Source: Pavona decussata (lineage: Eukaryota). Taken from it: 64,000 bases of DNA. Numbering within the stretch: the first letter of the stretch is position 1; each line of letters opens with the position of its first letter. Shown piece after piece: positions 36,204-58,700 of this stretch. The DNA is taken from contig CDRNST010000195.1 of assembly GCA_977016875.1 (NCBI GenBank), forward strand, positions 3,348,001 to 3,412,000. Reading direction: 5' to 3'. Both the position numbers and the translations under genes were made by a program. The notes below the pieces were generated by a model, which did no database searches, was not told the origin of the DNA, and saw only the letters and a program-made list of their open reading frames with translations.

Positions 36204-36340
36204 AAATAATAATTATGTGTAATAATAATAGTAATAATAATAATAATAATGATAATAATAATAATAATTATTATTATTATTATAACCAGCTTTATACGGG
36301 GAGCCCACTTAAGGAAAGTGATATTCAGTGGGGCTCTGTA
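36204..36340 (-). repeat. (AAT)n/(TTA)n microsatellite with an adjacent stem-loop; probable 3' stub of a non-LTR retroelement
   Basis: Minus strand reads GAGCCCCACTG..AGTGGGCTC..TATAAAGCTGG followed by (TAA)n, the hairpin-plus-simple-repeat tail layout of CR1/L2-type 3' ends. Confidence 0.4.
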
Positions 36341-37330
36341 GATTGAGAAAAACAGAAAGAAATGAAAACTACATTGTTTTAAAAAAGACAGCAATAAGGA
36401 ACAAAAATTAAAAATAAGAATTGAAAAGTAGCTAAAAAACACTCTTTGATACGTTGCTTAAAAATTAAAAAAGGAATTGGTCTTTGAAAGACTGTTCTAA
36501 AAGGTTCCATTCCTTAATACCCTGGTAAAGGAGTCTTTTCTTTTCGTAGTTTGTTCGTACAAGTGGAGGACGGAAATCATTCTTTCTCCGGCTGTTATTT
36601 TGTGGTCAGGAAAGTATATTTTGCAATATTTCGAAAAGCGCGGCCTTTCTTCTTCAGGGTATGTGTAAGACTGAATGGAATGGAATGGAAGGATGAGGCA
36701 TGCAACTAACAACTGACAGTGTTTTCTTGTTTTTTGTGGTTCATGCAGTGGAACTCCCGGTTAGTTGATATTAGCATGGGAATTTTAACCTTAAATGATG
36801 TCATACATTAATGCATAACTCGATTGTCACAAAATTGGTTCCAAATGATTCCTTGCACCGTCATCTAGCCAACCAATGCAGTGTTGGAACTTCAGAATAT
36901 ATTACACTCTCAATAAAGCTTTCACTTAACTGTTTTAAGTGCACCTGAGGGCACCCTTAACTTAATTGGAGACTGCACAACTGTGTATCATGGTTAAAAA
37001 ATATCATCCGGGGTGGCTCTATCACCTTACAAAGCCTAACTGATAGTTAAATTGCTTGAACATAGCCTTCAAAAGGTAAAAAAAGTTGCTATTTATAGAG
37101 CTACAAAAGTGTGTACTCACCCAAAGATGACTTTGTAGAAAAGGGACTTTGTGTATGCGTCACCAACACTTTTTTAGGTTTATATATGGGTACATGTAGT
37201 GGGAAAAAATCGATTAAAAAGTCAGGCAGACAAACAAGGTATTGCTAGAAAGCTTAAGGCGTGATCGCTAGGGTTGTAGGAGCTGTAGTTAATCATTCTA
37301 TAAATCAGTGATTGCAAATTGTCACTTTAA

Positions 37331-37690
37331 AGTGCCCCTGGGACGAAAATTTCATTTCCCATCTTGTTGCATTTTCGTGTAGACTTTATAAACTGTATTC
37401 TGTTGTTGCGAACTAAATAACAGCAGAATACAGTTTATGAAGTAGAATCCATATGAAAATTAGCCATGTGGAATTTTTTCTGTTGAGCCAATGACGTCAC
37501 TTCCTGTAATTTGAGCCTTAACTTCCGGAACAAGGCCAAGTAATGGCGGCCGTGAAATCTTGAATAAAAAGCTAAAAAAAATACTTCCAATCGTCGTAAA
37601 GGATTGAAATTTGGTAACATGAGTAAGAAGGTCATATTCTACACGAAAATGCAAAAAGATGGGAAATGAAATTTTCGTCCCAGGGGCACT
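37331..37690. mobile_element. 360-bp MITE with TTAA target duplication (Kolobok-like termini AG..CT)
   Basis: ~53-bp TIR AGTGCCCCTGGGACGAAAATTTCATTTCCCATCTT(G/T)TTGCATTTTCGTGTAGA with 1 mismatch. TTAA at 37327-37330 and 37691-37694. Confidence 0.9.
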
Positions 37691-38552
37691 TTAATGAGTC
37701 ATGTGTCTAGGTCTGAATGGCCTTCACTTTTCCAGGTGGAAAAGAATGGCAGGACGGTGTTCATGTTTGGGCCAAATTGCACGATTCTTACTTGGAGTAT
37801 TGTTTAGTAGTATATGCATGTTTTACACGTTAAAGTCTTTCTTAACCCTAAAATGGCGCCGAGGTCTGGAACGTTTTTTCGGTGAGAGCACTTCGTACCC
37901 ATTGGACGAGAAACTCTGTTGCAGAGGGGATGAAGGCGCTTGGGTCATCCTTTGAACACTTTTGGTGTATCTTCATACTTTTCTAGCCTTGCTTTGCCAC
38001 GTGTCTGATCCTTATTTTTGGCCATGTAGACAAGCGGGGTCACCCGACATATGGGCAGATGCTGATTTTCCTCACAGTGACATTTGGCAATATGCCTGGC
38101 CAGTTGGTGCTTGCTCTCTCTTTGTCTATAGCTTGTGTATGGCACAAGTCTGCTTTAAGGTCATTGAAATAAATTTCTGTCAGTGTGCTGGATATTTGTT
38201 AAAAATGTAAAATCAACCTTCTAAACATCCTGGGGTAACTCGGGGTAACCGTATAAGGATGATTATTTAATAAAGTGATGTTTATTCCTGAAACTCCTGG
38301 ATATATAGCGGTTTTTTTTTCCTGCCTAATTCCAAGTTTTTGGGTGATTTCCCTACACTTTTGTTTGAGAGGTTGATAAGATTAATATGTAGAAGGAAGA
38401 GATGAATTGAGTCATACCAGTTGAAAGACAGCAATAAAATATACCAATGGTGACAGCGCCATGAAAAAATATGAAAAGAGAAATTTTTTTTGATTCTTAA
38501 AAAAAAAAACCCGATCTAAACCTGTTGGGGACTTTCCTGACCAGGAACCTAG

Positions 38553-38575
38553 TTAGGGTTAGGGTTAGGGTTAGG
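38553..38575 (+). repeat. Short telomeric repeat (TTAGGG)3TTAGG
   Basis: Seen directly. Preceded by TGACCAGGAACCTAG and followed by ATCCT. Confidence 0.95.
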
Positions 38576-38580
38576 ATCCT

Positions 38581-38718
38581 GGTTGATATCCCGACATTTT
38601 GGTTGATATTACGACACCATGGTTGATATCTTGACATTGTGGTTGATAAGTCGACACGTTTGGTTGATATTGTGACACTTTGTTGATATCCTGACAAATG
38701 TTGGTTGATAATTTGACA
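38581..38718 (+). repeat. 7-copy ~20-bp-period motif array, GGTTGATA-N4-GACA
   Basis: Copies at 38581, 38601, 38621, 38641, 38662, 38681 and 38703, with fixed motif and variable spacers. Confidence 0.9.
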
Positions 38719-39179
38719 GAAGAAAAGATGAAGTTAAATTTTTTCTTTAATGTTGGTTACAACATTGAAAATTGAGGTCTAGCCGTAAGTGGATTAAAGG
38801 GTAGGGTAGAAGACTTTTTTTTATTATAGTTTCCAGCTTTTTTTTTGATTGCAAATTAAAAAATTGATTTTTTTGCAAGGTAGAAAAACGATAATGGTGT
38901 GTCCAAAAATCAACCATAGTAAATGTTAAGAAATTTTAAAAATTTCGTTTTGGAATGTTTATAAAATGAATTGGAAGCAATGTAGGCGTATATTGAGCCT
39001 AATATTATTTTTGGCTCAAATTATAAATCCTCTTTTTATGCCTAATGTGCTTTCAATCACTTTTGAAACATTCCCAAAGGAAAAATTTCCTCTTCTTTGC
39101 AGTGGAGGCAGTGGTTTCCCGGTCCCCTCCTCAATTTCCATTGAGGGTATTACTTCTAAGACTTTTCAGTCATATAGAA

Positions 39180-39428
39180 GGGTTTCATCAAGTAACCAGT
39201 TTGACTCATTGTTGCCGGGTATGTATGGTAAGCTAAAACGTTTAGCCAATGTTTTGCCTTTAATCTTGTTAGACTGAGGCAAAAGCAATACAGTGTATTT
39301 GTGGGGCACTCCTCAGGGGTTGGTTACCCTAACTCGTGTTTGATCCCAGACAAATCACAGATATTGCCTTATCAGTCTCCCAGGGGTATCATGAAGTTAC
39401 CATCTTCACTCGTTGTTGCCAGGGTATG
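39180..39428 (-). ncRNA. Putative structured RNA / hairpin cluster 3' of YR gene A
   Basis: Three related hairpins (39180-39223, 39301-39347, 39381-39428) are conserved with element B (55408-55613) and show compensatory stem changes. Transcription is not demonstrated. Confidence 0.45.
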
Positions 39429-39571
39429 TTGTCGTGGTTCCCTGGTCCCCCCAAACCCTTTTTTATTTTTATTTTTATTTATTTTTATTTTTTTTTGATT
39501 TTATTTTTATTTATTTATTTTTTATTTTTATTTTTTTTTTGCTTTCTAGACTGCCATCACCTCAATCCTTA

Positions 39572-42500
39572 TCAACGAAACATATTCTTTACTTTGTTGT
39601 AGCACCTAGAAAAACCCTTTCTCTCTCTGATCTCATCCAATTTGGCATGGACAATAAAGATCCTCTCTATGTCTTTTTTGGATGGTCTTTCATCATACTT
39701 TGAGAAGACTTCACGAATAGCATCAACATCATCCTCGTCCCACTGCTCCCGAGTGGACCGTGAACTGTGCAAGGATTGTGCCTTGTGGTGTTCTTCAATC
39801 CAAGTGTATGTATCCTTCTGTGGTTCCTCGTTCTCCTGTTGCAGGGAGAGAAGAGTTTCTGGTGTCTGAACGGATTGGAGATATTTTATACGGTTGTATA
39901 CCTTCCTCACCATCTTGTTCTCATTTGCCAAGACAACCAGTCGCAAGCTCTCTTTCATGGTGTTTCTCACATCGGCAAAGGTGACTTTTGCGTTGGTGGT
40001 TATTTCGTCTGCAAACAGCAAATCGATGTCATCCATTTGGTCTTTGGACAACTGGGCACCATTGCTGTCTGCCTTCTGCGCTTCCTCCTCTTCTTCCTCT
40101 GTTTCCTCTTCGCCTTCTTCCTCTGTTTCCTCTTCGCCTTCTTCCTCTGTTTTCTCTTCGCCTTCTTCCTCTTCCTGGTTTTTTTCCTCTTGCTGCTCTT
40201 CGTCCTCCTCCTGTTCTTCTTCATATTGCTGGCCTTCATCCTGTTGTTTATCTTCCTCCTCAAGGCCAAGATTTTTTCTGATAATTTGATGGCTCTCATG
40301 GGCAACTCGTGTTCTCGCTGCGGTCATATAATATTTGTCAGCAGTTGATTCCTTGTGACACATATGCTTGTGCACCTTCCGTTTGTCAACGGGGTCTGCA
40401 TCATGCAGTGTTGAGGCAGTCATCCTTCTTAAGGCAGTGCTTGTTATTCTCTTGCCTTTGGCTTTCTTCCACCACTCTGCTATTCGTTTTCCAATGGTCC
40501 CGTCATTGAAAGCTTGTCCAGACGTAGTGATGAAGAGCTCATTGACGCCCTTTTGAACAAAGACAGAGCGCACATGTTTTACGTAGAGGACAATCTGATT
40601 GTGAAGGGTGTTGTTCATGGAAATGGGCGCAGGTCCTGCCGTAGAGGTTTTATGGCGGGCAACATACATCACAAAACCACCCTTTCCATCTGACTCAGCA
40701 GTCTCAAAATCTCGGAGTCTTGCCGCCTCCAAAGGACCAGGTCTTTGACCATTCTCGAGCCCCAACCTAACGATTAAATAGTCTCGGACGCAGACGAATT
40801 GACTGGTGCTGACCTTCATGTCCGCGCACTTAACAAGCAGCTGTTTGGCCTCCATGGCTGGTTTAAACGTTGTTACATTTTTGGCGTCCTCGGGTGGGAT
40901 GGCGTTTCTGGAGTCTTCTACGATTTTCTCCCACCTCTCAGTCTGATATAGGCGTGAGATGGACGATCGCCATGCCTTGACGTGTTGAACCATATGCGGC
41001 AACTTCTCTTTTAATTCTTTGCCAATCTTTGGGATTCCCCTTACACCAGTTTCATATGCATCTACAAGAAACTCAAAAAACTTTGCCAGCGAACAAAGAT
41101 AGGACTTTACCGTTCCAGGCCTCATGTTTTTTGAGTCCAGCATTGGTTGGGCCCAGTTTTTGCACACGGATATTCCTCCCTCTATAAAGAGGCAATCAAT
41201 TTCTTTTGATCCTGGGTCCAGGTGTTCGACGATCTTGCGTACATTCTGCGCATTGTGCACGGCATGTCGCTCTTTTAAATGCCCACCATTGAGACTTTGA
41301 AGGTGTTGGCAGAACATTAGGAGAAACTGATTCAACTCATCATTGGCATGGTTCTTCTTCTGATAGAAGCTTACCCAAATTTCATCTTCGTCCTCATCCT
41401 CTTCTTCTTCATAATCAGAATCGTCATGTTCTTGGACATCTTGGTCATCGGACTCATCTGGGGAATATTGTTCGTCTTTATCATGTTGTTTAGACTTTTG
41501 GGGAGTTGGCGGGATGACATCTTCGATTTCTGATGATTTTTCCTGAGGCATGAAAAAGTCTTCATCGCTGGTGTTAGTAGAGTCTTCAGAGTCCAGCTCT
41601 GCTGCCAGAAGCATCAGGCCCGATGACATTTTCTTTTTCTTAGGGGAAACCACTACGTCCTCCTCATAACCCAGATTTTGGGCTCTTCGTCTTTTAGCCT
41701 TTACTATGGACCTGTCCCACTTGAGCTCTTCCTTTTTCGCCTTGGTATTTGCGAGCCTTCTGCATTGCAAACTCGTACTGCTCTGACTGCCGGTCAAGAC
41801 GGTGAGTGCACTGGAGGTGTGTTGTTAGGTATTGCACAACTTTGTCACACATCGGGCAGATCTTTTTTTGTCGACCACGGTATCGCTTCACTGACCCATC
41901 CTCCACTGTCACCCTTTTCTTTCCCCTTTTCTTTTCCTCGTGCTTTGCCATCTCAACAAGCGCTTGTATTCTGGCAATGGGAAGCCGCTGGTTTTTGAGG
42001 CAGTGTTTTAGCTCGATGTGCCTTGCCAGACGCGTTTGTACGGTGTGGCAGACCGGGCATTCCAGCTTTCTGTCGCGCTTGCAAACATTCTACATCTTGG
42101 CCTTTCTTTGTTTCGCTAAACGTGCCGGTTTGGTCTTGGGTTTTGGGTGTTGTTCCATAGATGGCCCTTCTGCTTCAGGGGTTGGTGGACATGTTGAATC
42201 GGGACCTTCGTTAGGGTGTTGTTCGATGGATGGCCCTTCTGCTTCAGGGGTTGGTGCTTTAGATTTTGGCAGCTGATCGCGGATGATCTTCTCCACCTCA
42301 TCGACATCTTCTGAGGTTAATGGCAACAGTTTCTCGAGGTCTAGCACCTCCATATGCTCAAGATAATGCAATCTCTGGATTGCCGACATGTGTTCATCAC
42401 ACATATTTATCGTTGGCCAGAGGCCCACTTGTAAGGCTGCTTTGCCATAGAGTTGGGTGCAGTGGTAAACCTCCATCAATTGCAGCTTGCTACGTCGTTT

Positions 42501-42941
42501 GCCTTTAGTTTTCTTTGGTTTTCCTTTGGCACGCTCCATCCTTTGCATGATTGCCATAAGATTTTCAACAGTGGAAGCTGAGGTGGACTCTAAGGTTGAC
42601 GGTTGTTTGGTTGGCTCTGAGGTTTCCTCTGAGGTTGATGGTTGGTTGGTTGACTCTGAGGTTTCCTCTGAGGTTGACGGCTGCTTGGTTGGCTCTGAAG
42701 TTTCCTCTGACGTTGATGGTTTGTTGGTTGCCTCTGAGGTTGACAGTTGCTTGGTTGGCTCTGAAGTTTCCTCTGAGGTTGACGGTTGCTTGATTGGCTT
42801 TGAAGTTTCCTCTGAGGTTGACTCTGAGGTTTACTCTGAGGTTTCCTCTAAGGTTGACGGTTGGTTTTTGTTTGTAGGCGATGTTGATTCCTTTGACTGT
42901 GGTGTTTTCTTTTTCTGGTGTTTTCTCCGCCTTGGAGCCAT
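39572..42941 (-). pseudogene. Zinc-finger / tyrosine recombinase gene A; YR-containing 741-codon ORF open at 39572-41797, 5' part disrupted
   Basis: ATG at 42941 (MAPRRRKHQ), in-frame stops at ~42831 and 42090, frameshift ~41730. Fingers CPVC..LARHIELKH and CPMC..LTTHLQCTH. YR motifs ENGQRPG (R), ARHKT (K), TALRR (R), HMCH (H), DKYY (Y). Glu-rich linker and helical C-terminal repeats. Confidence 0.85.
42575..42865 (-). repeat. Coding 36-bp minisatellite (QPSTSEETSEPT-like)
   Basis: Repeated GGTTGGCTCTGA(A/G)GTTTCCTCTGAGGTTGAC units in frame with gene A's N-terminus. Confidence 0.85.
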
Positions 42942-43067
42942 CTCGGTAATATACTAAATATCTTTACTCGTATCTTGTATGTTGTATCTCGTATCTCTAT
43001 TGGTATGTAATGAAATGAAATCCCAAGCTATTGAAATTGCGCAAATAAGTGGAGCTTTCCCGAGGTT

Positions 43068-43102
43068 TTAGGGTTTTCTAACCCTAACCCTAAACCTAAC
43101 CC
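43068..43102 (-). repeat. Inverted telomeric tract with hairpin TTAGGGTT-TTCT-AACCCTAA, then CCCTAAACCTAACCC
   Basis: Seen directly, ~130 bp upstream of gene A's ATG. Confidence 0.85.
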
Positions 43103-43520
43103 GATCATTTTGATATCGTAGTACAATTAGTAAGAAATGGAATAACCTGCATGTCAAATTTCAAGCAAGGGGATTAAATCCTCGCTGAAATATTGCAGTT
43201 AAAAGTATGGCTTGTTTCCATTGCTGCCCCCCCCCCCCGGAAAAAGCCCCCCCGATCATTTTGATATCGTTGTACAATTTGTAACAAATGGAATAACCTG
43301 CATGTCAAATTTCAAGCAAGGGGGTAAAATCCTCGCTGAGATATCGCAGTTAAAAGTATGGCTTGTTTCCATTGCTGTCCCCCCCGGAAAAAGCCCCCCC
43401 GATCATTTTGATATCGTTGTACAATTGTCCACAGATGTAACAACCTGCATGTTAAATTTCAAGCAAGGGGATTAAATTGTCGCTGAGATATTACAGTTTA
43501 AAGTTTAGCCTCATTCCAAT
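43100..43520. repeat. Three ~150-bp tandem repeats upstream of gene A
   Basis: CCCGATCATTTTGATATCGT..ACCTGCATGTCAAATTTCAAGCAAGGGG units, with GATC at 43103, 43254 and 43401. Confidence 0.92.
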
Positions 43521-46500
43521 GAAAAGAAAGCGAGCAGCGGATTGGGAACGAAATATGCGTCTGGCATTTTGTGAAAATCTTTTATCGTTAATATCTCAAA
43601 GGGGATTTAACGGTTTGAAGCCCAATTTCGTATGCATGTTCTTTGTCTACCACTGGACATTTGTGCCAAAGTGCACGTCATTAGATTATCTCTTTGTAAC
43701 ATTTTCTGCTTGTTAAAGTTTTAGTTGTTTTCAGTTGTTTACTCATTTGCATATGCTTATCCTCACGTTACAAATGGTTGTTTTCATCCGCAATTGTGTT
43801 AAAAAGAATAACTAGTTCCCTCAACACTATTTTCCAAGGTCTCTTGCAGATAAACGTTACTGTTAGACTAATAGTATTGGGTTAAAGTAAACACTTGTAT
43901 ACAAGAAACATATAGAAAGACATAAATATTCATGAACTCATTTAAATATGCCAAATATGCAGCGAAAAACCGTTATATTCATAGTTAAGTGTGCTCAGAG
44001 TGAGCACTATGCCCTTAGCCACTTATTTCTATGGTTTGTTTGCCGCTGCATACTTTGCATGAGGCTTAAATTATAGACTTTTATAGAGAAAAAAAAAGCA
44101 TGACTTACCAAAGTTGAGGCTTGACTGGTCAATGGTTGATTTTCCGACACCTTCGCTTTTGTTTAATAATTTTTTTTTTCAAAATTGCCAGGTTAGCTAT
44201 CCTAACCATGTTTAGCAAAAACCTTAAGGTATTACCAACTGAGCTATTGCTTTATCAGGTCAATAGAATGTAATAATTAGTTAACCTCGCGGTATGAAGC
44301 ATTGGCTGATTTGTCGACATTTTCAGTGGACGCCATTTTAGAAATACAAAAAAACTGCTAGAAAAATCACAATGAAGTGGATGAAGACGAACAAGGTGTC
44401 GTTGGGTAGCCCTTAAAGATTGCCATCTAATGGAGGGGTCATGCGGTCTTCAAACATGTATTTAAGCGGTTGACCGCTGACCAAATTGTGAAAATTAACC
44501 TTGGAAGGTTACTGGAAAAGTGATTGTGCTTAACACAGCGATCTTTTCAACTTGGACAAATGTTTTCTATTTAATCAATACATGGGTAACAGATGCGTGG
44601 CTGACTTAAAAATGAAAGTCGTTGCAGCATGCTGCAACGAGATAATTGCCGGAAAGCTAAGGTCATTAAAAATTCAAAATGGCGGAAAAAGAAGAAGTTC
44701 AAATTCTTATATCTCCCTTTTGTTAGTGCGTTATAAGCCGATATTTGGCCAAAATAACGTAAACTAAACCTTTTTTAAAGGTGTTGTACTTTTAGCGGGC
44801 TTTAGGGATGTTAGGAACGTATTTAATCGATGTAAACATGTAAGAACTTGGAACTGTTAAAACATTACCATTTAGCAAGTTCTGCTTTCGTGTTGAGGTT
44901 TAAACAAAAAAGCAGGTTATGTAAACATCATTAAATGTGTTTGCTATTCTGGGGCTAAAACTGTTTTTAATTTATAAGTAATCCAAGTAAGTGACCATCG
45001 TTTGGTTGATTTTCCGACATTTTTGTGGTTTTTTGTTAATTTCTTTAAAATAATACCAGGTTGAGCATTGATAAGTTTACAGCCTCAGTTTCAATGTGAT
45101 TATCTTTCCTATGAAACTCATTTCAATGTCAACAGCAAAAACCAAGAAAAGATATTACGGCTGAGACCCATGGTTGATTTTCTGACAGCAAAATGAGAAA
45201 TTTTGGGGTTAAAAGGTTAAATTTGTGGTGAAGTTTTTCTTTTTAAAAGTCGGGATTTTTCATGTGTTTACACAGCAAGATGTTAACTGCTCAGGATGTT
45301 TTAATTGAGAAAACCCCTAAAATTGATGTTAAGCTAAATCTTTAGTGCAAAAAACGAAAAGTCACCTTTTGTCATTTTTTAAATTCAAGATTGATCTTAG
45401 TATTAGACCTGTGTAGTTTTATTCTTTTCGTGAACTTTTTTAACATATGATAGTTAAATGTGTTGGCTATAAGGTGACACAACCACCTTGAGTGAAAACA
45501 TTGTTGTTGGGGAGATATACTTCTAAAATGGCTATTTTAGCTCCTCACAACAAGAAAAAATGCCTATTCAGTTACCCTTAAAATTGGCCTTGTCCGTGTA
45601 GTATTAAAGTGACCAAACTTTGCGTCTGAAAAGTTGAGCTTTTTTGCTTTGGAGCTGTGTGTCATTTCTAGAACCTTAAGCTAAATTTTTAATCATTTTT
45701 TTATCAAGCAACAGGTTGTTATTGCATCAAAATGACAAAAACGTCATGAAAATCCAAGACGAAATTTCACAAAGAAGTCACTGTAGTTGAAATGTGGAAA
45801 AAGTACAAAACATTAAAAAGATGCAGAATTTGTAGAAAATAACATTTTCCTGTGTCTTGTTATAAAATTTCTTATATTTTTTACTCTTTGAAAGATGATG
45901 AAAAAAAAGGGTCATTTTGGTTGATTTTATGACAATTTGGTGACAAATGAATCTTTTTTGCCTAAAAAAGAGGTTACAAAATAAAAAGATGGCAGGGCAA
46001 AAATACAAATACTTTTCCTTACGCTGTCTTCTTCCTGGCAATGTGACGAAAAATTAAAGTAGTTTTATAATTGGTGAAAGTCATGGTTGATATCCTGACA
46101 GTCAAAAAAAACAATTTCTTGGAAAAGAAAGATTTTTAGAAAGAAAACGGTAAAAATAAATAGACATGTCTGGGCATTTTTGAATAGCGCCAAAAATCTA
46201 GTATCTGTGGAATTTTTTGTTTTTCATACACTCTTATAGTTAGGGAAATATATTCATTTAAGTTTTTTTTTCGTGTTTCAAAAGAATGAATGTGACTTTC
46301 TGAGTTTTGAGTCTTGTACAAGACATGCAGGAAGTTGGTAAAAGTTTCAAAATTCGAAAAATCGGTTTTTAAGAATGAGAGTGTATCCTAGGGTAATCTA
46401 CTGGTGTTGTTTAGCTATGTTCCAAGTCTCTAATTCGAAAAATTCTAATATTTAACCCTCTTTTTCCTCCATTTAGACTTTTCTGGTTGATTTTCTGACA

Positions 46501-46691
46501 ATTTTGCATGTCGAGATCAATAATTCAAAAACACGAGGAAATTTTTGTCGTTCACACCCCTTAATTAATAAAGGACATCATAATAGACATGTTAGCAAAG
46601 TTTCAACCTTAGGGAAAGCTGTGGGAATTTTTTACAATTTTTTCAAAAGTGAAGTCTAAACTGTCCCAAAGTGTGTTGACGAGGAACCTAA

Positions 46692-46861
46692 TTAGGGTTA
46701 GGGTTATAATCCTGTGGATTTGCCTACACGATTCGGGGCTTTGCCTACAGGTCTGGGATTTGCCTACGAGTTTCGTGGACTTGCCTACATTTTTCCGGGA
46801 CTTGCCTACTTGTAAGGGATTTGCCTACAGGGGTCATTTTTTCCATTCAGGTTTTGCCTAC
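46692..46861 (+). repeat. (TTAGGG)2TTA followed by a 7-copy GG(A/C/T)(T/C)TTGCCTAC array
   Basis: TTGCCTAC at 46720, 46741, 46760, 46781, 46802, 46821 and 46854. Preceded by TGACGAGGAACCTAA, with ATCCT between the telomeric tract and the array. Confidence 0.9.
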
Positions 46862-48533
46862 ATTTTTTTTAAATGTTGTATATTTTTATATTTTATGGCA
46901 GGTTTAGTTTGTAAATAGGTTGGGGAGGATTATTAGAGTTCTTTTTTTATGAACATTGCCCTTAGAATGTTTAAAAAAAATTTTTCGAGGTTTTAGAATT
47001 TTTTTGTTTTTAGGGCGCCATCTTGGAAAATTTTTTTTTGTCTTGTGCGTAGATTTGTAGCCATGCCAAGAGACTTACAGAAGATAGCATATAGTTATAA
47101 AAGGTCTTTAAGTGTCATTGTCAGAGAGAACCGGGCAGGGTCCACGGATCGAGGTCGGCCGTTTCCTTTCAAATTTCTCTCACAGATTACCTTTCCGATA
47201 AGATTAATAAATATTCCCTTTTAAAAAGAACTGACTTAATTTCGTGCGATTTGACCACCCCCCCTTGTTTCTGGCTAATTTGCATAACAAAATCGCTTCA
47301 AATTTGGGGTAAGTTAAGTAGGTTGTTTGACCAACTTTTTTCCGTTTCTTAAGCGTTTCTTCGATTTATGTAGAATATTTGAGATTCGATCAAACATTAT
47401 TCACAAGCTGAGTGATTATGGATAGATTTTGTGTCTTCGGAGAGCGTGCAAATTTTCGTCTTGTCTAACTTTTGCGGATTCGCCAATTTTACGCCCTTTT
47501 CAAAAGACATTTTCTCACAACTGCGCGGTTAGAATTTCAAATAAAAACGGTTTTGGCACAGTCCATCCATCAGGGTTTAATGTTCAGCAAAATTTAAATT
47601 GGGACCTACGAATCCTTTTGCGAGATTGGCCATTAAAGTTGGTCAAAATGGGCAAACCAGAATACATTTTTCCCGTCATTTTCTAATTACCAACAGACAT
47701 AAAAATTGATTTCTTTCAACCGTTTGCATTTTATCCATAAGTACACTCTTTTTATTTGTCTGAAGTGTCTGTACTGTTTAAAACGAAGGACTTAAAGTGT
47801 TTTGTACGATATTAAGTCACATTTGAGTTCTCTCACGCGATATTTTACAGCTGATACCATCTGCAATATCTTATTACGAAATATCAAATTACACGTTTGA
47901 TCAAGTCTTGTTACTTTTACCGCGAAATGATTATCTAAATAACTTGTAATCGAAAATTTACCTTTTAATTCTAGTTTTTAAATACTAGCTAAAATCGACA
48001 TGTGACTTTTAAATCGATCTTGTGACTTTTACAATACTTTGGAAACTAAAATAGTCATCTCGCATTCACGTAGACAAATTTGTGAGGTCATTGAAATACG
48101 AAATTTGATCTCTTTAAAATGTTTAACTTTTACATTCAATTTTCTTTGCTTCATTGATTTAATTATTTTTACATTTTGACAAACTATTAATATATAATAG
48201 CTTGGAAAACAAAGCACATGTCGCTGGACTGCACTGGACTCTCGCAGTTGTTGATGCGCCTTTCAATAGTGATTTGTGTGTTTTACTGCCGTCAATCATA
48301 ATTACGCCGACAACTGGCTGGCCGCAAAAATACAAAAACCGACAACAGTGGATCGAAATCCGCCAAAACAGCGCACGAACATGACTTTTTGACGCCGCTG
48401 AGCCAAACGATTTTGTTTTCTAAAAGGTCTACTGAGGTGATGTACGGTAGTGAAAAGCATAATGATTGGTTGTATTATTTTTATTTTTTTGTACTTCAGA
48501 GTCCGCATGTTTTTGAAAGCTAAGGCGCAGTAA

Positions 48534-49166
48534 GGTGATGTTACACGGGACAACTTCACAACGAAGATGTGATACAGATGCGTGGACGATTTTCTGTGAA
48601 GATTTTGCATTGCAAGTTTTTGAACCAGCTTCAAAACTTGCAACGCCAAATCACTAATTCTCCTCAAGTTGTTTCGTGTAACATACATGTCGTCAATTTT
48701 CTGTGCAACGCCCTTCCAAAACTCTATTCGTTCCAAAGGAGAAGAAAATATTTTGCAAACGCCACGTCATCCTTGCACTCAAGTTCACGAACAAGCTGGT
48801 GAAATGCACCTCTATCTTCTAGTCTTCGTAGCCAATTCTTTGCCCAAACAACTCTCCTCCTCTTATTTACTCCTTCAAAACTCTCTACTAAAAACAGCAT
48901 TAGAACGACGCTCTACGCTATCTCCACTCGGCGGCTCCAGTCCTTTTTGTTTTACAAAATAACACCTTGTGACTTGGCCATTAGTCTAATTTTTCGCACA
49001 CGATTCGTTGCACTAAAATTTAAAAATCGTTCCGTGAAACACGTGTATTGGCAACGGATTTTGCGTGCACATTGCGCTAAAATTGTTCGTGTAACATTAA
49101 ATTAAAAATCGACGCTGTCTTACGCTAACAATTGTCCTTGCGAATTGTCCCGTGTAATATCACTCT
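48534..49166 (-). mobile_element. Internally deleted PIF/Harbinger element nested in Sola3
   Basis: TIR GGTGATGTTACACGGGACAA / TTGTCCCGTGTAATATCAC with flanking TAA. Minus-strand remnant RRRVVWAKNWLRRLEDRGAFHQLVRELECKDDVAFAKYF resembles Harbinger transposase N-termini. Confidence 0.7.
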
Positions 49167-52100
49167 TAACTCGTGAATTGTTTGTAATAACTGTGTTCAC
49201 CGTATTTCATTTCCTCTCCCTTTCCCAACTAAAAGATGATTTCAAGCATAACTCGGTGTACTATGCTTGAAATCATCTTTTACTCAGACACGAGCACGAT
49301 TTTACATATTTTTCAATAGGCTCGCAGTAGGTTTTCTTCCTGGACAAAGAACCATTCGCTTCTAATCCAAGGTTTTCACAAATCACTCTAAGATCTACTA
49401 ACTTCAGAGAGTGAAGCTTGTTAGAGCTTACTAGCTCACATATGTTGTTGGAACCAACTACAATCGGATGGGTCGGCATTGCCATGTCATTCATCACAGT
49501 GGTTCTGAGTGTTTCATGAGCCACTTCAGATTGGATTGCAACAACGTCTTCTTCTGTTACATCCTCCTCTCTGATACCCCTTTGGCGCTGAACAGCTGTG
49601 AGTCTTGAAAACAAACTACTGATCTGTTGTGAACTCCTCCATTCCTCTGGCGTGAACACAAGGTAACCTTCTTCGTTTCTCACAACTTTCATTTCTTTTG
49701 CTAGCTGGACAGGGTCTGCTTTATATCCACTTCTCGCTCCATCATTAAACTTTCTCAGCAGAAATTCCTTTGACTTCTCTGTCATTCGTGAGGGTTTCTT
49801 GACAACTTTCAGGGTTCATCCCGGTTGTCTAACTTTACCACTTTCTCCAAAGCCAAGTTCAGATGTAGTACTTCTGCTTGGGCCTTGGAGATCAAGTGTA
49901 ACTCCCGTCACTCGGCTTGCCCATTGTTGATGTATCTTGTCAAACATTGACTCTGACTCCAGCTCTCGTCTATGTTTGCCTGTGTCCATGTGCTTGTCTA
50001 CCTCTGACTGCGATCTAAAAGTCAGAATGCACCCCGTCTCCCTACATGGAAAAATGTCAACCTGATTTCTAACAGTTTCTCCCAGTGTGCCACGTTCCTT
50101 GATTGATGGGCCAAAAGGTTGGATGATTTTTAAACCAGTGTCCCCTTGTGAACTGGTCTGAAGATCAGCGTAGGGTATTAGGCGTCCTGGACCAATATTG
50201 TAGGCCTTCCATACTCTCATGCCAGTGTCGTCGAAATGGAAGTTGTTTAGAATACTGATCCCCGGAATCTTGCTCTCCTTGTTTGCTTCCTTTGAGGTGT
50301 CAACTTCTACCACTGCTGCACGACATCCCTTTAGTCCACCATGTGACTCTAATGCCTCCTTCATTTCCTGAGCAGTGGTAACATTATGTTTCTTGTTTAC
50401 CCAGCGTCTGATATGGGCCTTCATAGGTGCTGCTTTTCGATCGCATATGTCCTTTCCAGCTTGCGGATCGGAAAAATCGTACCGAATTGGACGGACGCCA
50501 GTTGTCACCCCTAGTTCTTGTAAGCTGACAAGGAGTGGTCCATTATGGTAACAACCAGCATTATCAGAACGAAAAAAAGCTTTGTTAACACTGGGATATT
50601 CAATCTTGATAGTTTGTAGCAAGTTCTCGATATCGGACAAAACGGCGAAACTGTTCTGTGTGCAACTATTGAAAAGGTGAACAAAGCATTCCACTTCAAA
50701 CTTGTTACCCTCCGGTCCTATCCTACCCTGGCTAGTGATGACTGCACTGATGTGCCAACTTCTTCCTCGTTTGCCAAAGAAGTCACTCATTTGTTCGCGA
50801 TACTGCATTGGAAGAAACTTCATAGCCCAATCCATTATTATTAGGCAAGATTCACTGTCAAGTTTATTGAGCACATCTTGTTTTGCTTCTTCTTGGTTGC
50901 AAGACCGTAGGAAATGAGCCTTCCACGCCCTGATGTCGTCCAAACTCTCTGCAAACTCATATTGTGATCTTGTTTTCTGTTCTTCCGGTACCTGCAGCAC
51001 GTCATCCAGCATTTTGCCAACGTCCTCTAAGACTTTCTCAAGCGCTTCACATCTTTCACACTGGTATTGATGTTCGTGATCGCATTCACCACTAAACTCG
51101 GAAATGGCTTCGTCACTTAGAGCGTGAACAGTACAATGATCACTGCATTGCTCCTTTTTGCCAACGTGCGTCTTGTAGTCTGTTTTCAAATATCTTTTGC
51201 CATCTTTAAGTAACATTTGAGTGGAAGCTGTACTAATACCATGTTCCGCTAGACTTTCGACAATAGCTGATATATTATCAAAAGCTTCTGTTCCCTTTGG
51301 TGTGACGTTGTCAAGTCCATGCAAAGACTTTTGCATAGACGCCTCTATCATCCTGTACAGGGAGCGCTCGCTTGCTGGAAGAAAGCCCTCCTCTCTACAA
51401 TACTCCATGTATTGGCTTATTATTCGAGAAGGAATAAGTGTTCTGATTACTGCAGGGATAATTATTCTTTCGCCGGAATCGAGCTTCATGGTTTTAGTGC
51501 CGAAGGCCACATCTTGTACAAACTCTGGCCTTGAAATGAAGTTGATAAAGTGGTCGACTTTGACAGGGTCAATTTTGGTGCGGTATATGGGACTCTCGAG
51601 AGGTGGCTGTCCTTTACCGGCTACTGTTGTGTGTTGACGGGCTTGATCTATTCTCCATTTGGACAAACCTGGAACTATATCTTGCAGCTCGCTTTGTGTG
51701 AAGTCGTTCGCAAAGAGTGAGAGAATCTGGCGCTTTGTCTGCCAGGAGTCAGCTTGATTATAAGCCTTTATTAATACTTCTACGATCCCTGTAGATGAAT
51801 CAAAGCGCTTGCGCTTAGATGTATTCTCCAATAGTGGCTCCGTCTGTAATGCCTTCCACACAAGCTCCTCTTGCCCTGGTGCTATAACGGAGAGAGAGGC
51901 AGTAAAGGTCTCCTTAACCTTGCGTACGTAGTAGCGCTGCTGCGTGTCAGAAATATCATTCTAATCAGTATTCAGTGTCGACCGCACAGGGCTGTACCGT
52001 CCATCTGAGATATCGACTGCTTCATTTAACTTTTGCCTCTTTCGATTTTGCTCCTCTATCTCATCGATCCAAATGCTAACTTCCTCTTCAGGAATAGAAC

Positions 52101-52878
52101 TGTGCGCCGATTGTGAGGACTGTGAAGACTGCGAGGATTGTGAGAATGTCAATGAACTGACTGTTTCCAAACAGACACCAGCCACGGGCTCATCGATTTC
52201 AGTTGGTTGGGGTGCCAAAACATCACCGGCCTCGGGTGCATCTTCTTCATTTGATTGGGGTGCTGAAAGCTAGAAAATATAAATTCAGTTTATCGCGAAA
52301 CAGTTCGTTGATTTCTCAGCGTTTTGAACACTCACCATGTTAAGATCTTTGATCGAATAAGCAAATATAAATTACCAACCTCTTTTTTGCTTTTGATGTC
52401 ACGTGCCTTGTAATTTTCTTTGCGGCAAATTGTACATATGACTACAGTTGGACAAGAAATAGATCGTACATTAAAAAGTACTAGAAACGTTAAATTAAAC
52501 GCTAAACAAATTATCAAATCTAATCACAGCAATTAGGGCAGTGGTTCTCAGCATGTATATATGCAAGTAAACCGCTCGTGGATTCCTGTTTCCTGTCATG
52601 TAGGCCCTTCTCTATTTCAGAGACAGAAAGCCTAAAAGCAACAAGATATCACTTACACTCTTTTCTTTTCTTTTTGTCTCTTTTATAGTCAAAAATTCTT
52701 CGGAAAAGTCGAGATATCGACGAGATTTGCGGTTACGGACAAACTCTACAGAAACATGCACCTCCTTCATTTGGGGTAACAAGAACAGTACACAGAACTC
52801 AATTATAAAACTGACGGGAGGGAATACCACAGGCCACCAATTCGCAACAGTAATAGTATATTTTGTGAGGCCAGGAAT

Positions 52879-52968
52879 AATCTCGTACCCAGCGTCCTCT
52901 GGCTTTTTGGTCAGCAGATGGTCGACCACCCGCTGACCAAAACGAAAGAGGACTCTGGATACGAGATT
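52879..52968. mobile_element. Short palindromic MITE AATCTCGTACCCAG..CTGGATACGAGATT in Sola3 intron 1
   Basis: Nearly fully self-complementary 90-bp hairpin. GGCCAGGAA occurs on both flanks. Confidence 0.7.
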
Positions 52969-52983
52969 GGGCCAGGAAAGCCA

Positions 52984-53116
52984 AATCTCGTACCCAGAGT
53001 GAGTGGACCTCAGGCTTTTAGGTCAGCGGGTGGGCGCCAGGAGAGACTCTGGGGTACTGAAATTTTATTACCGCAGGATTTCTTCCGCTGACCAAAAAGA
53101 CTCTGGGTACGAGATT
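52984..53116. mobile_element. Second palindromic MITE of the same family
   Basis: TIR AATCTCGTACCCAGAGT / ACTCTGGGTACGAGATT and internal GGTCAGCGG..CCGCTGACC. Confidence 0.7.
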
Positions 53117-55407
53117 GGGAAAGGCTAACAGTTCGGTCGGGGATGGGAAAAAGAGAGATCCTGGGAACGAAAGTTGCTGTTGTGTCTGCGTATCCTGTGT
53201 TTGTCGCTCCTGTCGTTTTCCGCAACTCAGGGCAGGTCTATTAAAATACCAAAATTTATCTTAGGATCACATCAATCTGGCCGCTCCTTTTTAGTCTTTC
53301 AGTTGGTACTCTTTGTTACTGATCGATCCCATTTATTTCAGGTGTCTGACCCTATCAACATGGGTTGAATCAATTAGTGGAAAAATACTAAGTGAAAAAC
53401 GGGAGCTTAGCATAACGTGGATCCCACAGTGGTAGTGGTTATTCTGGGCTTCTGTAAATGCCATTTTTAACAGGTTTCGCAGGTTCCACAGATTCCGGCG
53501 TTCCACTATTCCATTCTGCTGTGCAATTCTAGAAATAAATAATTTCCTTTAAAACATGCCGATAACCCACTATACTATTGGACCTACTATTAAACTCTCT
53601 TTTTCCAGTCCGCTTTAAAGTATTCAAGACCTTACCTGACCCAATAGGAACTACTTTGCCATGTAAGTCATAGATTTCCATAGACATAGTAGCAGTAACT
53701 TGGCGTGGATTGGCTAGCTTCTTTTGTGGACCCTCGTGAGAAGGATAAGCACACTTATTGGTTTTGCGGCCAACCCAATCTGTTGTGAGTGAATTTCTGT
53801 GCTTTGGACAGACAGTCATCGCGGCCTTCTGTTCAGGAGTAACACGGAAGTAGCCAGCACGATTTAGAATGAGGTCATCTTCGCTAACAACACTTCGACC
53901 GCTAGCGCCGATGGTTTTCAGTAGAGGTTTGACATCTCTTGTACACGCTGCTAATGGTATAATAGTATTTCCTATACCGACTTGGTCACAAGGAGAGTCC
54001 TCAGAATGGAAAGAACAGCTCACTAAAATACTCATGTTTTCGAAAGCATTCGACTACTTTGTTTACGTGCTGTTCAGTGAAAACACTGGCTCAAATTACA
54101 TGACGTGACAGAACGACAACCGGGAAATTGAAGTATCGCTACCAAATTTACATGTATGTTCGAAGTGCCGTGCTTAGTAAAATGGAAAAAATAAAAAAAA
54201 ACAAAACAAAATGGTAAAACGAGTTTTGATAACTACCGTTTTGAGCTTCCACTTTGTAACTGGCGACCTTTCTTGACTCTTTAAAATTTTAAGTTATTTG
54301 AGCACGTAACGCAATAACAGAGGTGACTGTGATCAGTACGAAATCAATTAGGTTAACTTAGTTTATTTTAGCAAATTTATAACGAGAATAAAAATGGCCA
54401 GATTTTCAACAAGCTGTTTGGATTTTCTAAGCAAAACTACAACAACTGGTTGTAAATTTCAATTTGTCATGTTTAGCGTTTAATGCAGAAATCATCGCAT
54501 GCGAAACTCGATCAAATGTAATTTTAACATTTCACGGTAAACATCGCCGATAACATCGCACGTGAAAACTCAAACGTAATTAGATATCGCATAACTTGCT
54601 GTAGAAAACAGCAACGACACATCAGATCAGACTGGTACAAAGAACATATTTATGGTTAAAACGCAAACCTGCAGACAAAATTGTAATTATTCGCTCAGTC
54701 GGTAAAATAAAAATGGCGGGAAAATGTATTCTGATTATCCTGATTTAGGCCGACTGAAATGCCCAATTGTGCGAAAGGATTTGGAGGTCCCAATCTAACT
54801 TTTGCTAAACATTAAACATGGATGGCTAAACTGTGCAAACACCGCTTTTCGTTAAAATTCTATCCACGCAGATGCTAGAAAATGTTTTTTGAAAAGAGCT
54901 TAAAATTTTCGAATCCGCCAAAAGCCACACCAGACGAAAATTTGCACATTAACCGAAGACATAAAATATTTCCTAAATCATTCATCTTGTACATGTGTTT
55001 TGATTGAATGTCAAATATTTTATATAAATCGTAAGAACGCTAAAAAGCGGTAAGACACAGGTGAAATAACTTACGCAAGTTACCCTAAATCTGAAGCTAT
55101 TTTCTTATGCAAATTAGCCAGAAACAAGGGGGTGGTCAAAATCGCATGAAAATAAGTCAGTTTTTTTTGAAAGGGAATATTTTTTAATCTTATCCGAAAG
55201 GTAATCTGTGGTAGGAATTTGAAAGGAATCGGCCGACCTTGAACCGTGGGCCCTGCCCGGTTCTCTCTGACAATGACACTTAAACATTATTTTTTAATGC
55301 ACTTTATTCAGCTTTTTTCTGGTTTCCTGGTCCCCCCCTTGTAGTTTGGTGAGAAACAACAAGAGTATTATCCTGAGACTGAGAAAGCAAGGACACCAAG
55401 ACTCTTC

Positions 55408-55613
55408 GTGGGGCACTCCCCAGGGGTTGGGTACCCTAGCTCATGTTAGATCCCGAACGAAGTTTCATAGGTGCCTTTTCACAGCCATTCAGGGGGTATC
55501 ATCGGGTAACCAACCCGACTCATTGTTGCCAGGATAAACATATTTCAACAAAAGTGAACAGCCTGGTAAAGCAGTGAATATCATCGAGTAACCAACACAA
55601 CTCATTGTAACGC
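55408..55613 (-). ncRNA. Putative structured RNA / hairpin cluster 3' of YR gene B
   Basis: Hairpins at 55408-55454, 55490-55535 and 55574-55613 are homologous to those in element A. Confidence 0.45.
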
Positions 55614-55731
55614 AATTTTTTTTGTTTTTTGTTTTTTTTCTTTAACAACAACGATGTAGTATTTTTCTTCTTTGACATTAAGTTTTTTTTTTAACAACAA
55701 CGGTAACATTGGCCCACTATATCAACACAAC

Positions 55732-58700
55732 CTATCTCTTCTTGAAAATGTTTTTTACCTTGTCATAACATCTTAAAGGAATTTCTTGTCATGACTTCTT
55801 TCAAAATTGGGCAACTTTCAAACTTCTCCTTAATATCTGCCTTCTTTGGACAAGTGTCAAAATCTGAAAAAGCTTCCTCTATCAATGTAGTGTCCTGCTC
55901 TGACCAGGCAATTCTTGTGGAGCTCTTTGCTGTTCCACTGCTACAGCTTTTCTGGACCCATAGTTGGGTGCGAGAGGTATCCTTCTCTTCCGGAATCTCT
56001 TCGATATTGGAGGGAAACTTTTTTCTCTGAAGATGCTTGACCCTGAAGTAAACTTTCTTTACCATCTCTTCATCGTTAGTAAAACCGACAAGGTTTAGGC
56101 TCTTGCTCATCACGTTCCTGGTTTGTTGCAGCGAGAGAGAGGCATTGGTGTTTATATAGTGCGCAAAAAGGAGGTCGATGTCATCAGACTCTTCTTCGGT
56201 AAACTTAGGAGTTTTTGGACTGTCCTTTGTTGGGGTTTGGTTGCTTTTATTGATGTCTGCTAACTCGATGTTGGCTGCCAGAACGCTGTGACCCTTCACA
56301 GCCATGTCACCCAGGGATTGCAGCATGTAGTATGTCTCAGCGGTGCGGCCAGAGTGGCACATAAGCCTATGTGCACTGCGTTTGGAGACGTCATCAGTTT
56401 TGTGGAGTTGCGCGGCATGCATTTTCCTTAGCCGGGTGCTTGACACATTTGTCTTGCCAGTTGCTTTTCGCCACCAGGCAATGATGCATTTCCCGATTGT
56501 ACCGGGCTGGAAATCATTTCCTTCTTTTGTTACAAATATGCCTTCAACATCTTCACGCGCAAAGAAAGGCCTCACGTTTTTGATGTACACTTCGAGGTTG
56601 CTTTTCAAATTAGCAGACATGGTTAGTGGAGCCGGCCCCGCTTTGCTTCGTTTGTGGCGGCTGACATACATGACGTACTTCCCATCTCTATCCTCAATTC
56701 TCTCAAAGTCGCGCACCCTCGCAGTTTCCAGTGGTCCAGGCCGTTGACCGTTTTCCAAGCTGATTCTGGCGATGATAAAATCTCTTATCACAAGGAACTC
56801 CTTATTTGATGGCTCTCTTGTCTGGCATTCCAAAAGAAGATGCAACGCTCTTTTTGCAGGCTCGGAGTTTACCATGTCGTTGGTGTCACTGGGGTTTACT
56901 GCATCAACTCTATCTTCGAGAAGCTGTTCCTAACGCTCATGTGAATACAGCTGATTCACGGACGAGCCCATGGCTATAAAGCGCGGAATAATCTTCGTGA
57001 TCTTGGTAAGGGTGGGCTTGTCAATTGTTGGAATGCTTTTGACAGAATGCTCGCTATAATCGGCAATAAATTCAAGGAATTTAATAAGTGACGTTAGAGA
57101 AGCCCTGATGGTGCCTGGTCGTGAAGCCTTCTTGTCTAGAAGGGGCTTGGCGCAATGCTTCCAAACCTTTAAGCCACCATCATCAGTGATGCAGGCCAAT
57201 GTTTCATCCTCCTTGTCAATGTTGTCGTGGATGCGGCGTACGTTGTGCGTGTGGAAGATCGCATCGCGCTCTTTCTTGCACCCCTTCACCTTCTGAATCA
57301 GCTACTGCCTCGCCATGGTCACTTTTGTCGTCACTTTCTGACGGGCCAGTTGCTTGAGGTCTTGGCAAAGGTCTGGACATAAATGATGCTCCCGCTTTTG
57401 AGGGGCTTGGTGCGACGATAACCATTCCTCCATCGTCGTAACTCTCGTCTGATGAATCGCTGGAGAGCAACTCTTTAGAAAGGAGGACGAGAGGACTTGG
57501 ACGTTCGGTTTGCTTTGCTGGAGGTTCATAGTCATCGTCACTGGAGGAGATATCGAACGATTTCCGTTTCCGTGATGTGGAAGGACTACCGGGATGCTGT
57601 GTGAGTTTCTTCTTTTGAATGAGTGCTCGGTCCCACTGCAGTTCGGAAGACTTGCCGCTATAACGACGTGCCATAAGCACGAGCGACAAATATCTGTCGG
57701 TTGTTCGGTCTACCTTGTGCACTCGCTGGAGGTGTTTGTTGAGGTACAAAACCACCGAATCACACAAGGGACAGATCTCCTTGAAGCGTTGGTACTCCTT
57801 GATTCCAGCCTTGGTAGTTTTTTTGTCTTTTCCTCCTCTTACTTTGTTTCCTTTTCTGGCCATCTCCGCTAGTGCTTTCACTCTGACGGGTGGTATCTTT
57901 TCGTTGTTCTTGACGTGGACCAAGCGCAGATGCCGTGGGAGGTTACAGACCACTTTTTGACAGAGAGGGCAACTTCTGGGGGTGTTGTGTTTGCGTTTAT
58001 CTTCACCGTTTTTGTTCTTCTTTTTCTCGCCAGGAATGGCCTTTCTGATTTTCATCTTGACTTGTGTGCTTGTGGTAGTGGTTCCACTTGGACCTGCTAC
58101 TGGAACAACCTCGTCAGCCTTGTTACTACCAGCTTGGCCACTGTTGTTGTCACAAGGAATGTTCCTTCTGGTTTGTTTATTTCCTTGTGTTTCATTATTT
58201 GCTGTTCCACTGGGATCTGCGACTGAGACATCTTTGTCAGCCTGGTTACTACCAACTTGCCCACTGTCATCCTCAATCCTCTGAGCATCTTGCATGCTGT
58301 CATCCTCAACTCTCTGAGCATCTTGCATGCTGTCATCCTCAACCCTCTGAGCATCTTGCATGCTGTCATCCTCAACCCTCTGAGCATCTTTTATACTGTC
58401 ATCCTCAACCCTCTGAGCATCTTCCATGCTGTCATCCTCAACCCTCTGAGCATCTTCCATGCTGTCGTCCTCAACCCTCTGAGCATCTTCAATACTGTCA
58501 TCCCTGAACAGGGTAGAGTTCGATTCCAGCTCGTGTAGCAGTGCTAGGGCCGTTTCAGCGATGTCATCTTTGGAGACTTCTAGCATCTCTAGACTGTGAT
58601 TGTGAAATTTCTTGCAAAGGACATTGAGGTAAGACAGGGCAGTGGAGGCTGTCAACTCTAGTGTTCCGAGGCCGAGGCTCTTTGCAGCCACAGAAATTAA

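Follow-up and report, generated by a model that had tools for sequence, protein, structure and literature searches.

Putative arm-type site arrays in head-to-tail, Crypton-like tyrosine-recombinase transposons within telomere-type repeats of a coral genome

Cryptons carry a tyrosine recombinase (YR) and no reverse transcriptase, and are presumed to move through a circular intermediate (PMC3212892). Direct repeats of 4-6 bp at both ends are taken to be their recombination substrates; they are described without terminal inverted repeats and with ill-defined ends (PMC3212892). The CryptonF group has an extra C-terminal DNA-binding domain, GCR1_C, and Cryptons have been reported from cnidarians (PMC3212892). 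Little has been established about Crypton movement: their ends are said to be difficult to define, and the literature searched describes no cis-acting sites. Nor did full-text literature searches turn up any description of telomere-targeting or array-bearing Cryptons. Several known systems have repeated sites near a recombining or replicating sequence. The integrases of lambda (acting on attP), Tn916/Tn1549 and CTnDOT are tyrosine recombinases that use an inverted-repeat core around a short overlap, flanked unequally by a second class of repeated sites, and unequal arm-site clusters give tyrosine integrases directionality. These systems are bacterial and have 2-5 arm sites, to which a small N-terminal domain binds with the help of host bending proteins. 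DDE transposon ends (Tn7, Mu, the 12-bp TnpA motifs of En/Spm, and the IR/DR of Sleeping Beauty) hold multiple subterminal copies of the motif bound by the transposase, distributed unequally between left and right, and family-specific motif variants limit cross-mobilisation. Plasmid iterons are direct repeats of ~20 bp with a conserved core, a variable spacer and two-helical-turn phasing, and iteron variants define incompatibility between related plasmids. Finally, the telomeric retroelements SART/TRAS of Bombyx, HeT-A/TART and Athena/Terminons lie head to tail, with fixed polarity and short telomere-repeat tracts between them.

Here, we analyse two arrays of short repeated sites, A and B, in a 64,000-nucleotide stretch of the Pavona decussata genome (the whole of which is called the window). 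The reading we lean towards, at somewhat better than even confidence, is that each is an array of sites just inside the 3' end of one of two neighbouring transposons, which are YR-only (Crypton-like), lie head to tail and target telomere-type repeats. Compared with the published description, the elements agree with the working definition of a Crypton in their enzyme content and in having direct repeats at both ends (here CCCTAA or CT units). They differ in their 10-bp inverted termini, each with a mirror-image site, and in having a phased array of 6-10 sites, dispersed sites and a simple-repeat target (telomere or CT). The inverted termini are a departure from the textbook description of Cryptons, not from the enzyme-based definition. 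The closest functional analogy would be the arm-type sites of lambda-class integrases, with which the elements share the type of enzyme, an apparent inverted-repeat core around a short overlap and a second site class that flanks this core unequally, with one site at the 5' end and 6-10 at the 3' end. In contrast to the lambda-class systems, there are 7-10 sites with strict ~20-bp phasing, additional dispersed sites, and candidate zinc fingers or helical modules in the protein. DDE subterminal sites would be a looser analogy, given that there is neither a DDE transposase nor a staggered-cut target-site duplication and that the insertion site would be set by repeat-unit homology. The likeness to telomeric retroelements stops at layout: the elements lack reverse transcriptase, endonuclease and poly(A), and their enzyme is a tyrosine recombinase.

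The two arrays are real and far above chance. Seven matches to GGTTGATANNNNGACA make up array A, at 38581, 38601, 38621, 38641, 38662, 38681 (1 mismatch) and 38703, with end-to-end spacings of 20, 20, 20, 21, 19 and 22; over the window the A pattern has 14 matches against 0.26 expected. The array is antisense to the recombinase gene and lies 3' of it, and a genome-wide search found this A-type paired-site array nowhere else in the 602 Mb. In array B, seven matches to GGAYTTGCCTAC fall at 46716-46861 (0.41 expected), spaced by 21, 19, 21, 21, 19 and 33. Tandem Repeats Finder called both arrays, with periods of 20 and 21. An earlier sequence-only reading had reported seven copies of GGTTGATA-N4-GACA in A and seven repeated sites in B, mostly 19-22 bp apart with variable spacers. 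The pattern search bears out both counts and both locations, and the measured spacings are 19-22 plus the single 33 in B. The unit given for B was too short, as the conserved B unit is nGGAYTTGCCTACA. That reading also had both arrays start right after ATCCT: the pentamer precedes both (38576-38580 and 46709-46713), although in B the motif begins 2 nt further on.

The pentamer ATCCT forms the inner half of TTAKRWTCCT, a 10-bp inverted repeat that abuts TTAGGG tracts and marks the element termini (Table 1). Relatives were gathered by a whole-genome search with the junction sequence and the protein, and from contigs that code the nearest homologues in other assemblies. The same plan recurs in about 20 elements from this genome and four to five other assemblies. 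In gene sense, it starts with (CCCTAA)n, TTAGGWTCCT, ~5 nt, one site and a long non-coding region with 3-8 dispersed sites. The gene and a conserved 3' block follow, then 6-10 phased sites in opposite orientation, AGGAWCCTAA and again (CCCTAA)n. The polarity of telomere-type junctions is always the same, with the gene sense strand on the C-rich strand. A clean copy on contig C315 is 4.7 kb long and sits between about 20 and about 45 telomere repeats, and among short copies that lack an intact gene the termini, the 5' site and the array are retained. The A and B copies are damaged; intact relatives are found on contigs C321, C36 and C315, and the P0011 element is likewise intact. On this contig, C195, at least eight elements cluster at 3.26-3.41 Mb, about 790 kb from the contig end in this assembly. 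The A junction and array also turn up in public contigs from another sample of this organism. One metagenome contig (L046:4723-11822) departs from all other elements in that the gene and 3' block are inverted relative to the array and 5' terminus; either a true inversion between sites of opposite orientation or a fault of assembly may account for the flip.

Table 1 Coordinates of elements X, A and B and their features, given as positions in the window
Feature	Position	Strand	Description
Element X	36300-38552		Truncated stump left of A; 5' terminus kept
5' terminal inverted repeat of X	38543-38552	+	AGGAACCTAG, reverse complement CTAGGTTCCT
(TTAGGG)3 tract between X and A	38553-38570	+	
Element A	38571-46691		8.1 kb; gene on minus strand
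3' terminal inverted repeat of A	38571-38580	+	TTAGGATCCT
Array A	38581-38718	+	7 sites GGTTGATA-N4-GACA; pattern search, TRF
Conserved 3' non-coding block of A	39180-39428	-	Downstream of recombinase gene; common to element B, 55405-55615
Tyrosine-recombinase gene of A	39572-42950	-	One in-frame stop, one frameshift
Internal telomere-like tract of A	43078-43099	-	Short, inverted; 151-bp tandem repeats then at 43100-43504
Six dispersed A-type sites	44134-46500	+	GGTTGATTTTCYGACA-like, at 44134, 45004, 45172, 45919, 46085, 46485; co-oriented with array
5' end of A	46661-46691	+	Single inverted site, then 5' terminal repeat AGGAACCTAA at 46682-46691
(TTAGGG)2 tract between A and B	46692-46703	+	
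3' terminal inverted repeat of B	46704-46713	+	TTATAATCCT; 5' partner TTATGATCCT from intact C321 copy
Array B	46714-46861	+	7 sites nGGAYTTGCCTACA (GTGGAYTTGCCTACA-like); pattern search, TRF
Nested transposon inside B	47112-55279	.	~370-bp inverted termini, TTAA duplication, 8.2 kb, unrelated
Tyrosine-recombinase gene of B	55763-58817	-	Three pieces: 370, 119, 533 aa

In element A, the 3' terminal repeat matches the 5' repeat on the other strand at 9 of 10 positions, and the single inverted site at the 5' end reads CACACTTTGGGACAG in gene sense, with the GACA half kept. The gaps between its dispersed sites (166-168 and 400 bp) match the layout of relatives. The telomere-type tract that separates A from X is presumed to be a remnant of the target repeat or the crossover region. 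Element A also holds a small TTAGGG/CCCTAA hairpin with an inverted tract, followed by 2.7 copies of a 151-bp repeat (43078-43504 in all). We considered the inverted tracts at 38553 and 43078 as the two ends of an element and rejected this. The relatives have direct tracts on both sides and no internal inverted tract, which is missing even from the closest relative, L009; hence, element A runs to 46691. At the usual offset of +206, the stump X retains a first dispersed site (38346, GTGATTTCCCTAC); of its zinc-finger region, a remnant is left at 37894-38103. Element B is interrupted by the nested transposon, whose 681-aa ORF (49816-51861) lacks a Pfam match and carries a C2H2-like finger towards its C-terminus, and which is missing from the 98%-identical copy on C321. 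Homology to that intact copy stops at 59580, and the 5' end of B is absent.

The only gene of these elements codes for a tyrosine recombinase, and beyond the region of this gene element A contains no ORF that reaches 90 aa. Pfam gives a Phage_integrase match, below the curated cut-off. We predicted the structure with AlphaFold from 21 homologues; over 350-390 columns, which cover the core-binding and catalytic domains, the model matches XerH, Tn1549 Int, lambda Int and Cre. R338/R344, K383, R457, H481 and Y490 occupy invariant or near-invariant columns of the 21-sequence alignment and, by analogy, are candidate catalytic residues. Within the A gene, the SAM-like and catalytic domains and the C-terminal two-module region all fall in a 741-aa ORF (39572-41797). 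The two CPxC...H...H fingers map to about 41748-42068, with a low-complexity N-terminus upstream, and one stop and one frameshift part them from this ORF; in B both fingers sit on the 533-aa piece. Neither Pfam nor the called genes of the relatives' loci revealed a reverse transcriptase in A, in B or across the set of about 20 elements, and we rejected on that ground a retroelement reading in which the units are telomere-capped in the manner of Athena or HeT-A.

Plasmid iterons were, with transposase subterminal sites, the comparison offered by the sequence-only reading. The in-phase direct repeats of about 20 bp do resemble iterons, and the arrays could on that basis be origin or partition sites of an extrachromosomal circle. 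We consider this very improbable, and rejected an origin function for want of a Rep gene: the elements have no Rep-like initiator or partition gene beside the recombinase, which is the only ORF, and no origin, and their sites stand at transposon ends beside inverted termini. No circular form, joint or circle junction was seen in the assembled contigs of public runs. With neither Rep nor a DDE enzyme, the arm-type sites of tyrosine integrases are a closer match than either comparison.

Beyond the recombinase core, two parts of the protein are candidates for reading the sites. The C-terminal 164 aa are predicted, at pLDDT above 90, to form two three-helix modules, with a disordered linker between them. 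DUF3504 and GCR1_C are absent from the Pfam matches, Pfam returned nothing at threshold for the C-terminal and finger regions, and Foldseek found no match to the C-terminal model at E<=0.001. VIA-align placed the modules at Z 5-6.2 to homeodomains (including double ones), Myb/GARP and the telomere-binding HOT1/TRF1, and also to FF domains, a range that can reflect a common helical arrangement. The modules are thus possibly helix-turn-helix-like and DNA-binding, judging from the model. The Myb-like domain of the sequence-only reading comes down to these weak fold matches, with no Pfam match behind it. Of the two fingers, finger 2 (YLTTHLQRxH) is almost invariant across motif classes.

We wrote all arrays in one 17-column frame. 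Judged by this alignment, the A and B motifs are variants of one ~16-bp template, roughly TTGTTGATTTCCCTACA, the common form found in C315, G2 and L008. The arrays had been described as having the same geometry and a different motif. The geometry is indeed the same, but the two motifs share 9-10 of 14 aligned positions and follow the one template. The closest protein relative of A, P0001 (61% identity), carries TGTTGATTTTCCGACA where A has its GGTTGATA-nnnn-GACA site, and two further variants are GGTCGAACCTCGCCC and TGCGYTYTSCTTAC. Among the classes, class I is defined by CCCTAC, class II by GCCTAC, class III by CCGACA and class IV by CCCGCC. Five motif classes coexist in this genome, and a single locus of another assembly has three next to each other. 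B, C321 and C67a, which have GCCTAC, share the spacing pattern 21-19-21-21-19(18)-33 with C315 and L008, which have CCCTAC. This indicates that each site of one array has its orthologue in the others, yet all of the sites differ at the same motif positions.

Each element carries its own variant throughout, in the array, in the dispersed 5' copies and in the single inverted 5' site. In 13 element pairs, we compared the 5' site with the array of its own element: the last three positions (TAC, GAC or GCC/CCC) match throughout, and position 11 (C or G) does so in nearly all readable pairs. The own-array match sum is 77, against a mean of 59 and a maximum of 73 after shuffling, and none of 20000 shuffles reached it, in a comparison that ignores kinship. 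Dispersed, co-oriented sites with the element's own variant (3-8 of them) were found in A, E3, G2, E2, F2, P0013 and C321, at offsets of +~200, +~600 and +~765 from the 5' end and then in pairs 160-168 apart. The array of F2 (L041:11838-11972) mixes two variants, with five copies of GTAGGCACATCAA and two of GTAGGGAAATCAA, and its dispersed sites have a third, intermediate form, GTAGGCAAATCAA; it is possible that this is a transitional state. Compared between lineages, all 10-19 sites of an element change together, from which it follows that recognition of the sites is probably lineage-private, as far as sequence comparison can tell. Gene conversion among the repeats could account for part of the concerted change.

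Could such arrays be neutral tandem duplications with no sequence-specific reader? Tandem repeats expand easily, and the same motif has grown into a satellite of more than 3.4 kb (G000:C84:1366202-1369571, its start in L055). Its 20-bp units combine a class-II motif ([GT][GT]GATTTGCCTAC) with a homogenised spacer, CTTTTG; it looks like an element array that has expanded into a satellite. The element arrays behave differently from this true satellite in that their spacers are not homogenised: only 13-16 motif positions are conserved and the spacers drift. Motif positions are conserved at 0.69-0.97. Within arrays, identity is 0.84-0.94 at motif positions and 0.30-0.59 in spacers, and between diverged orthologous arrays it is 0.69-0.92 and 0.31-0.60, respectively. 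Site number and spacing are kept across lineages that are about 45% identical in protein, and distant single sites carry the same variant as the array. We take this as evidence of selection on the sites and regard neutral duplication as scarcely credible. A set of lineage-specific sites is supported instead and, on the sequence comparisons, these are most likely arm-type sites for the element's own recombinase.

The layout of the sites also speaks to a regulatory alternative, in which they control transcription, either as operators or enhancers for autoregulation or as a promoter or insulator acting on the next element, in the style of HeT-A 3' ends. Many elements have 3-8 co-oriented sites at conserved offsets upstream of the gene, and these dispersed sites fit a regulatory role at least as well as one in recombination. 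Elements are also commonly arranged head to tail, so that the 3' array faces the 5' end of its neighbour. Against this stand the single site adjoining each terminal inverted repeat in mirror orientation and the gene-less short copies, which keep the array and the 5' site, the layout of cis-acting transposition sequences. More weakly, RNA-type contigs do not cover the array: in RNA-type runs, exact contigs were found at 39214-39434 and 40677-40904 only. We rate transcriptional control as unlikely to be the main function, and control and recombination roles are not mutually exclusive.

The concerted change bears, too, on whether the sites recruit a host factor, such as a telomere or Myb-type protein, that protects, silences or tethers the element. 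The elements live in telomere-type repeats, the presumed ancestral site TGTAGGGAAATCAAC holds a TAGGG half-site, and the class I site contains the telomere-repeat-like GTAGGG. However, lineages have swapped this half for GTAGGC, GTCGG, GGCGGG or GTAAG in all sites at once, a replacement that a single conserved host reader would not tolerate, and the clade that targets (CT)n has the same array plan. Recruitment of a host protein is therefore improbable in our view, and we return to the element's own recombinase as the candidate reader.

The sequence-only reading had proposed that finger or Myb-like domains co-evolve with the motif in an element-specific code that separates self from non-self. 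We built a tree of the SAM-like and catalytic region (22 rows). On it, motif class changes 6 times, against a mean of 10.5 when shuffled; P0001 is placed with A (SH-aLRT 100), and the (CT)n elements form a single group. Motif type was to have been checked against protein phylogeny, and the classes do cluster on the tree, but gene and array are linked in one element and such tracking is expected from descent alone, so that it is no test of co-evolution. Classes I and II are interleaved on the protein tree, which implies several independent, concerted C/G switches. Motif distance correlates positively with the core, finger and C-terminal distances alike (Mantel, 0.33-0.48). Once the core is accounted for, the partial Mantel value is -0.10 for the fingers; for C-terminal modules 1 and 2 it is 0.13 and -0.06. 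None is significant in these 11-12 elements, a sample with little power. By eye, one column in the last helix of C-terminal module 2 (N versus E/D) appears to tell G-type and T-type sites apart at motif position 14; this unscored pattern reflects one branch of the tree and hence carries no weight. Co-evolution of the finger or C-terminal domains with the motif thus finds no backing in these comparisons, which have little power and in which finger 2 is nearly invariant. What stands of the proposed code is that the variant is element-specific at every site; no domain tracks the motif beyond shared descent.

The target repeat varies between lineages as well. A sister clade is flanked by (CT)n/(GA)n instead of telomere repeats, in C36 and C354 in this genome and in P0013 and P0020 elsewhere (loci G000:C36:3418640-3418930 (L048), C354 (L050), L042:11699-12012 and L045:5797-13994). 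This clade has homologous termini (TTATATAC-like) and arrays of 8-9 sites, GGTTGATnTCCCGCC. Direct CCCTAA tracts lie on both sides of the elements in C315 and L009/L040/L041/L043, and L045 has (CT)n on either side; for the C36 (CT)n element, the 5 kb examined contained no 5' end. From these flanks, the target appears to switch together with the repeat unit next to the termini. An intact B-family copy on C321 (G000:C321:330342-330470 and 336880-337300; L011, L023, L052) sits in a 22-bp satellite (TTCTTACGTTTGGGGGTTAG plus 2-3 nt) that includes the telomere-like GGGTTAG. Both junctions fall at this hexamer, which indicates that an embedded telomere-like unit suffices as a target.

These observations can be brought together in a mechanism that we judge a little more probable than its negation, in which the sites are arm-type accessory sites for the element's own recombinase, used in an asymmetric end-pairing complex and insulated by lineage-private variants. 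The inverted termini would be core-type recombinase sites, and the 6-bp repeat unit that lies between them in the circular form would be the crossover (overlap) region. Ten-bp inverted repeats around a 6-bp unit are the classic YR core-site layout. Were the crossover to take place inside this repeat unit, the telomere or (CT)n target and the variation in tract length would both be accounted for. The ~16-bp sites, at their 19-21-bp spacing, would engage an additional DNA-binding portion of the protein, for which the two N-terminal fingers and the two C-terminal three-helix modules are the alternatives. Their occupation would give rise to an asymmetric synaptic complex, with one site on the left and seven on the right, that pairs the ends for excision and integration, and the private variants would insulate co-resident lineages from one another. 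In this scheme, we infer the binding itself, the binding domain, the circular intermediate and the insulation between lineages. A broader proposal, to which we give tentative and less than even credence, is that of a coral transposon family in which simple-repeat crossover and lambda-like arm arrays are combined with private variants, forming incompatibility groups without cross-mobilisation.

The elements offer sharp ends, a plausible core site, a target rule (telomere versus CT) and phased sites with natural variants, and end and target recognition by eukaryotic tyrosine-recombinase transposons thereby becomes a bench question. If the broader proposal is true, a cis-acting architecture and a recognition code would for the first time have been defined for eukaryotic Cryptons. 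The elements also bear on the origin of interstitial telomere-like tracts and of motif-derived satellites in cnidarian genomes. Should the enzymes prove programmable by the overlap sequence, they could serve as site-specific integrases.

Tandem copies of a ~3.7-kb unit, about nine and a half in number and in some cases 5.5 kb apart, occupy the left part of the window (1-36100). Each unit has a 237-aa minus-strand ORF with no Pfam match, and this tandem array directly adjoins the transposon cluster.
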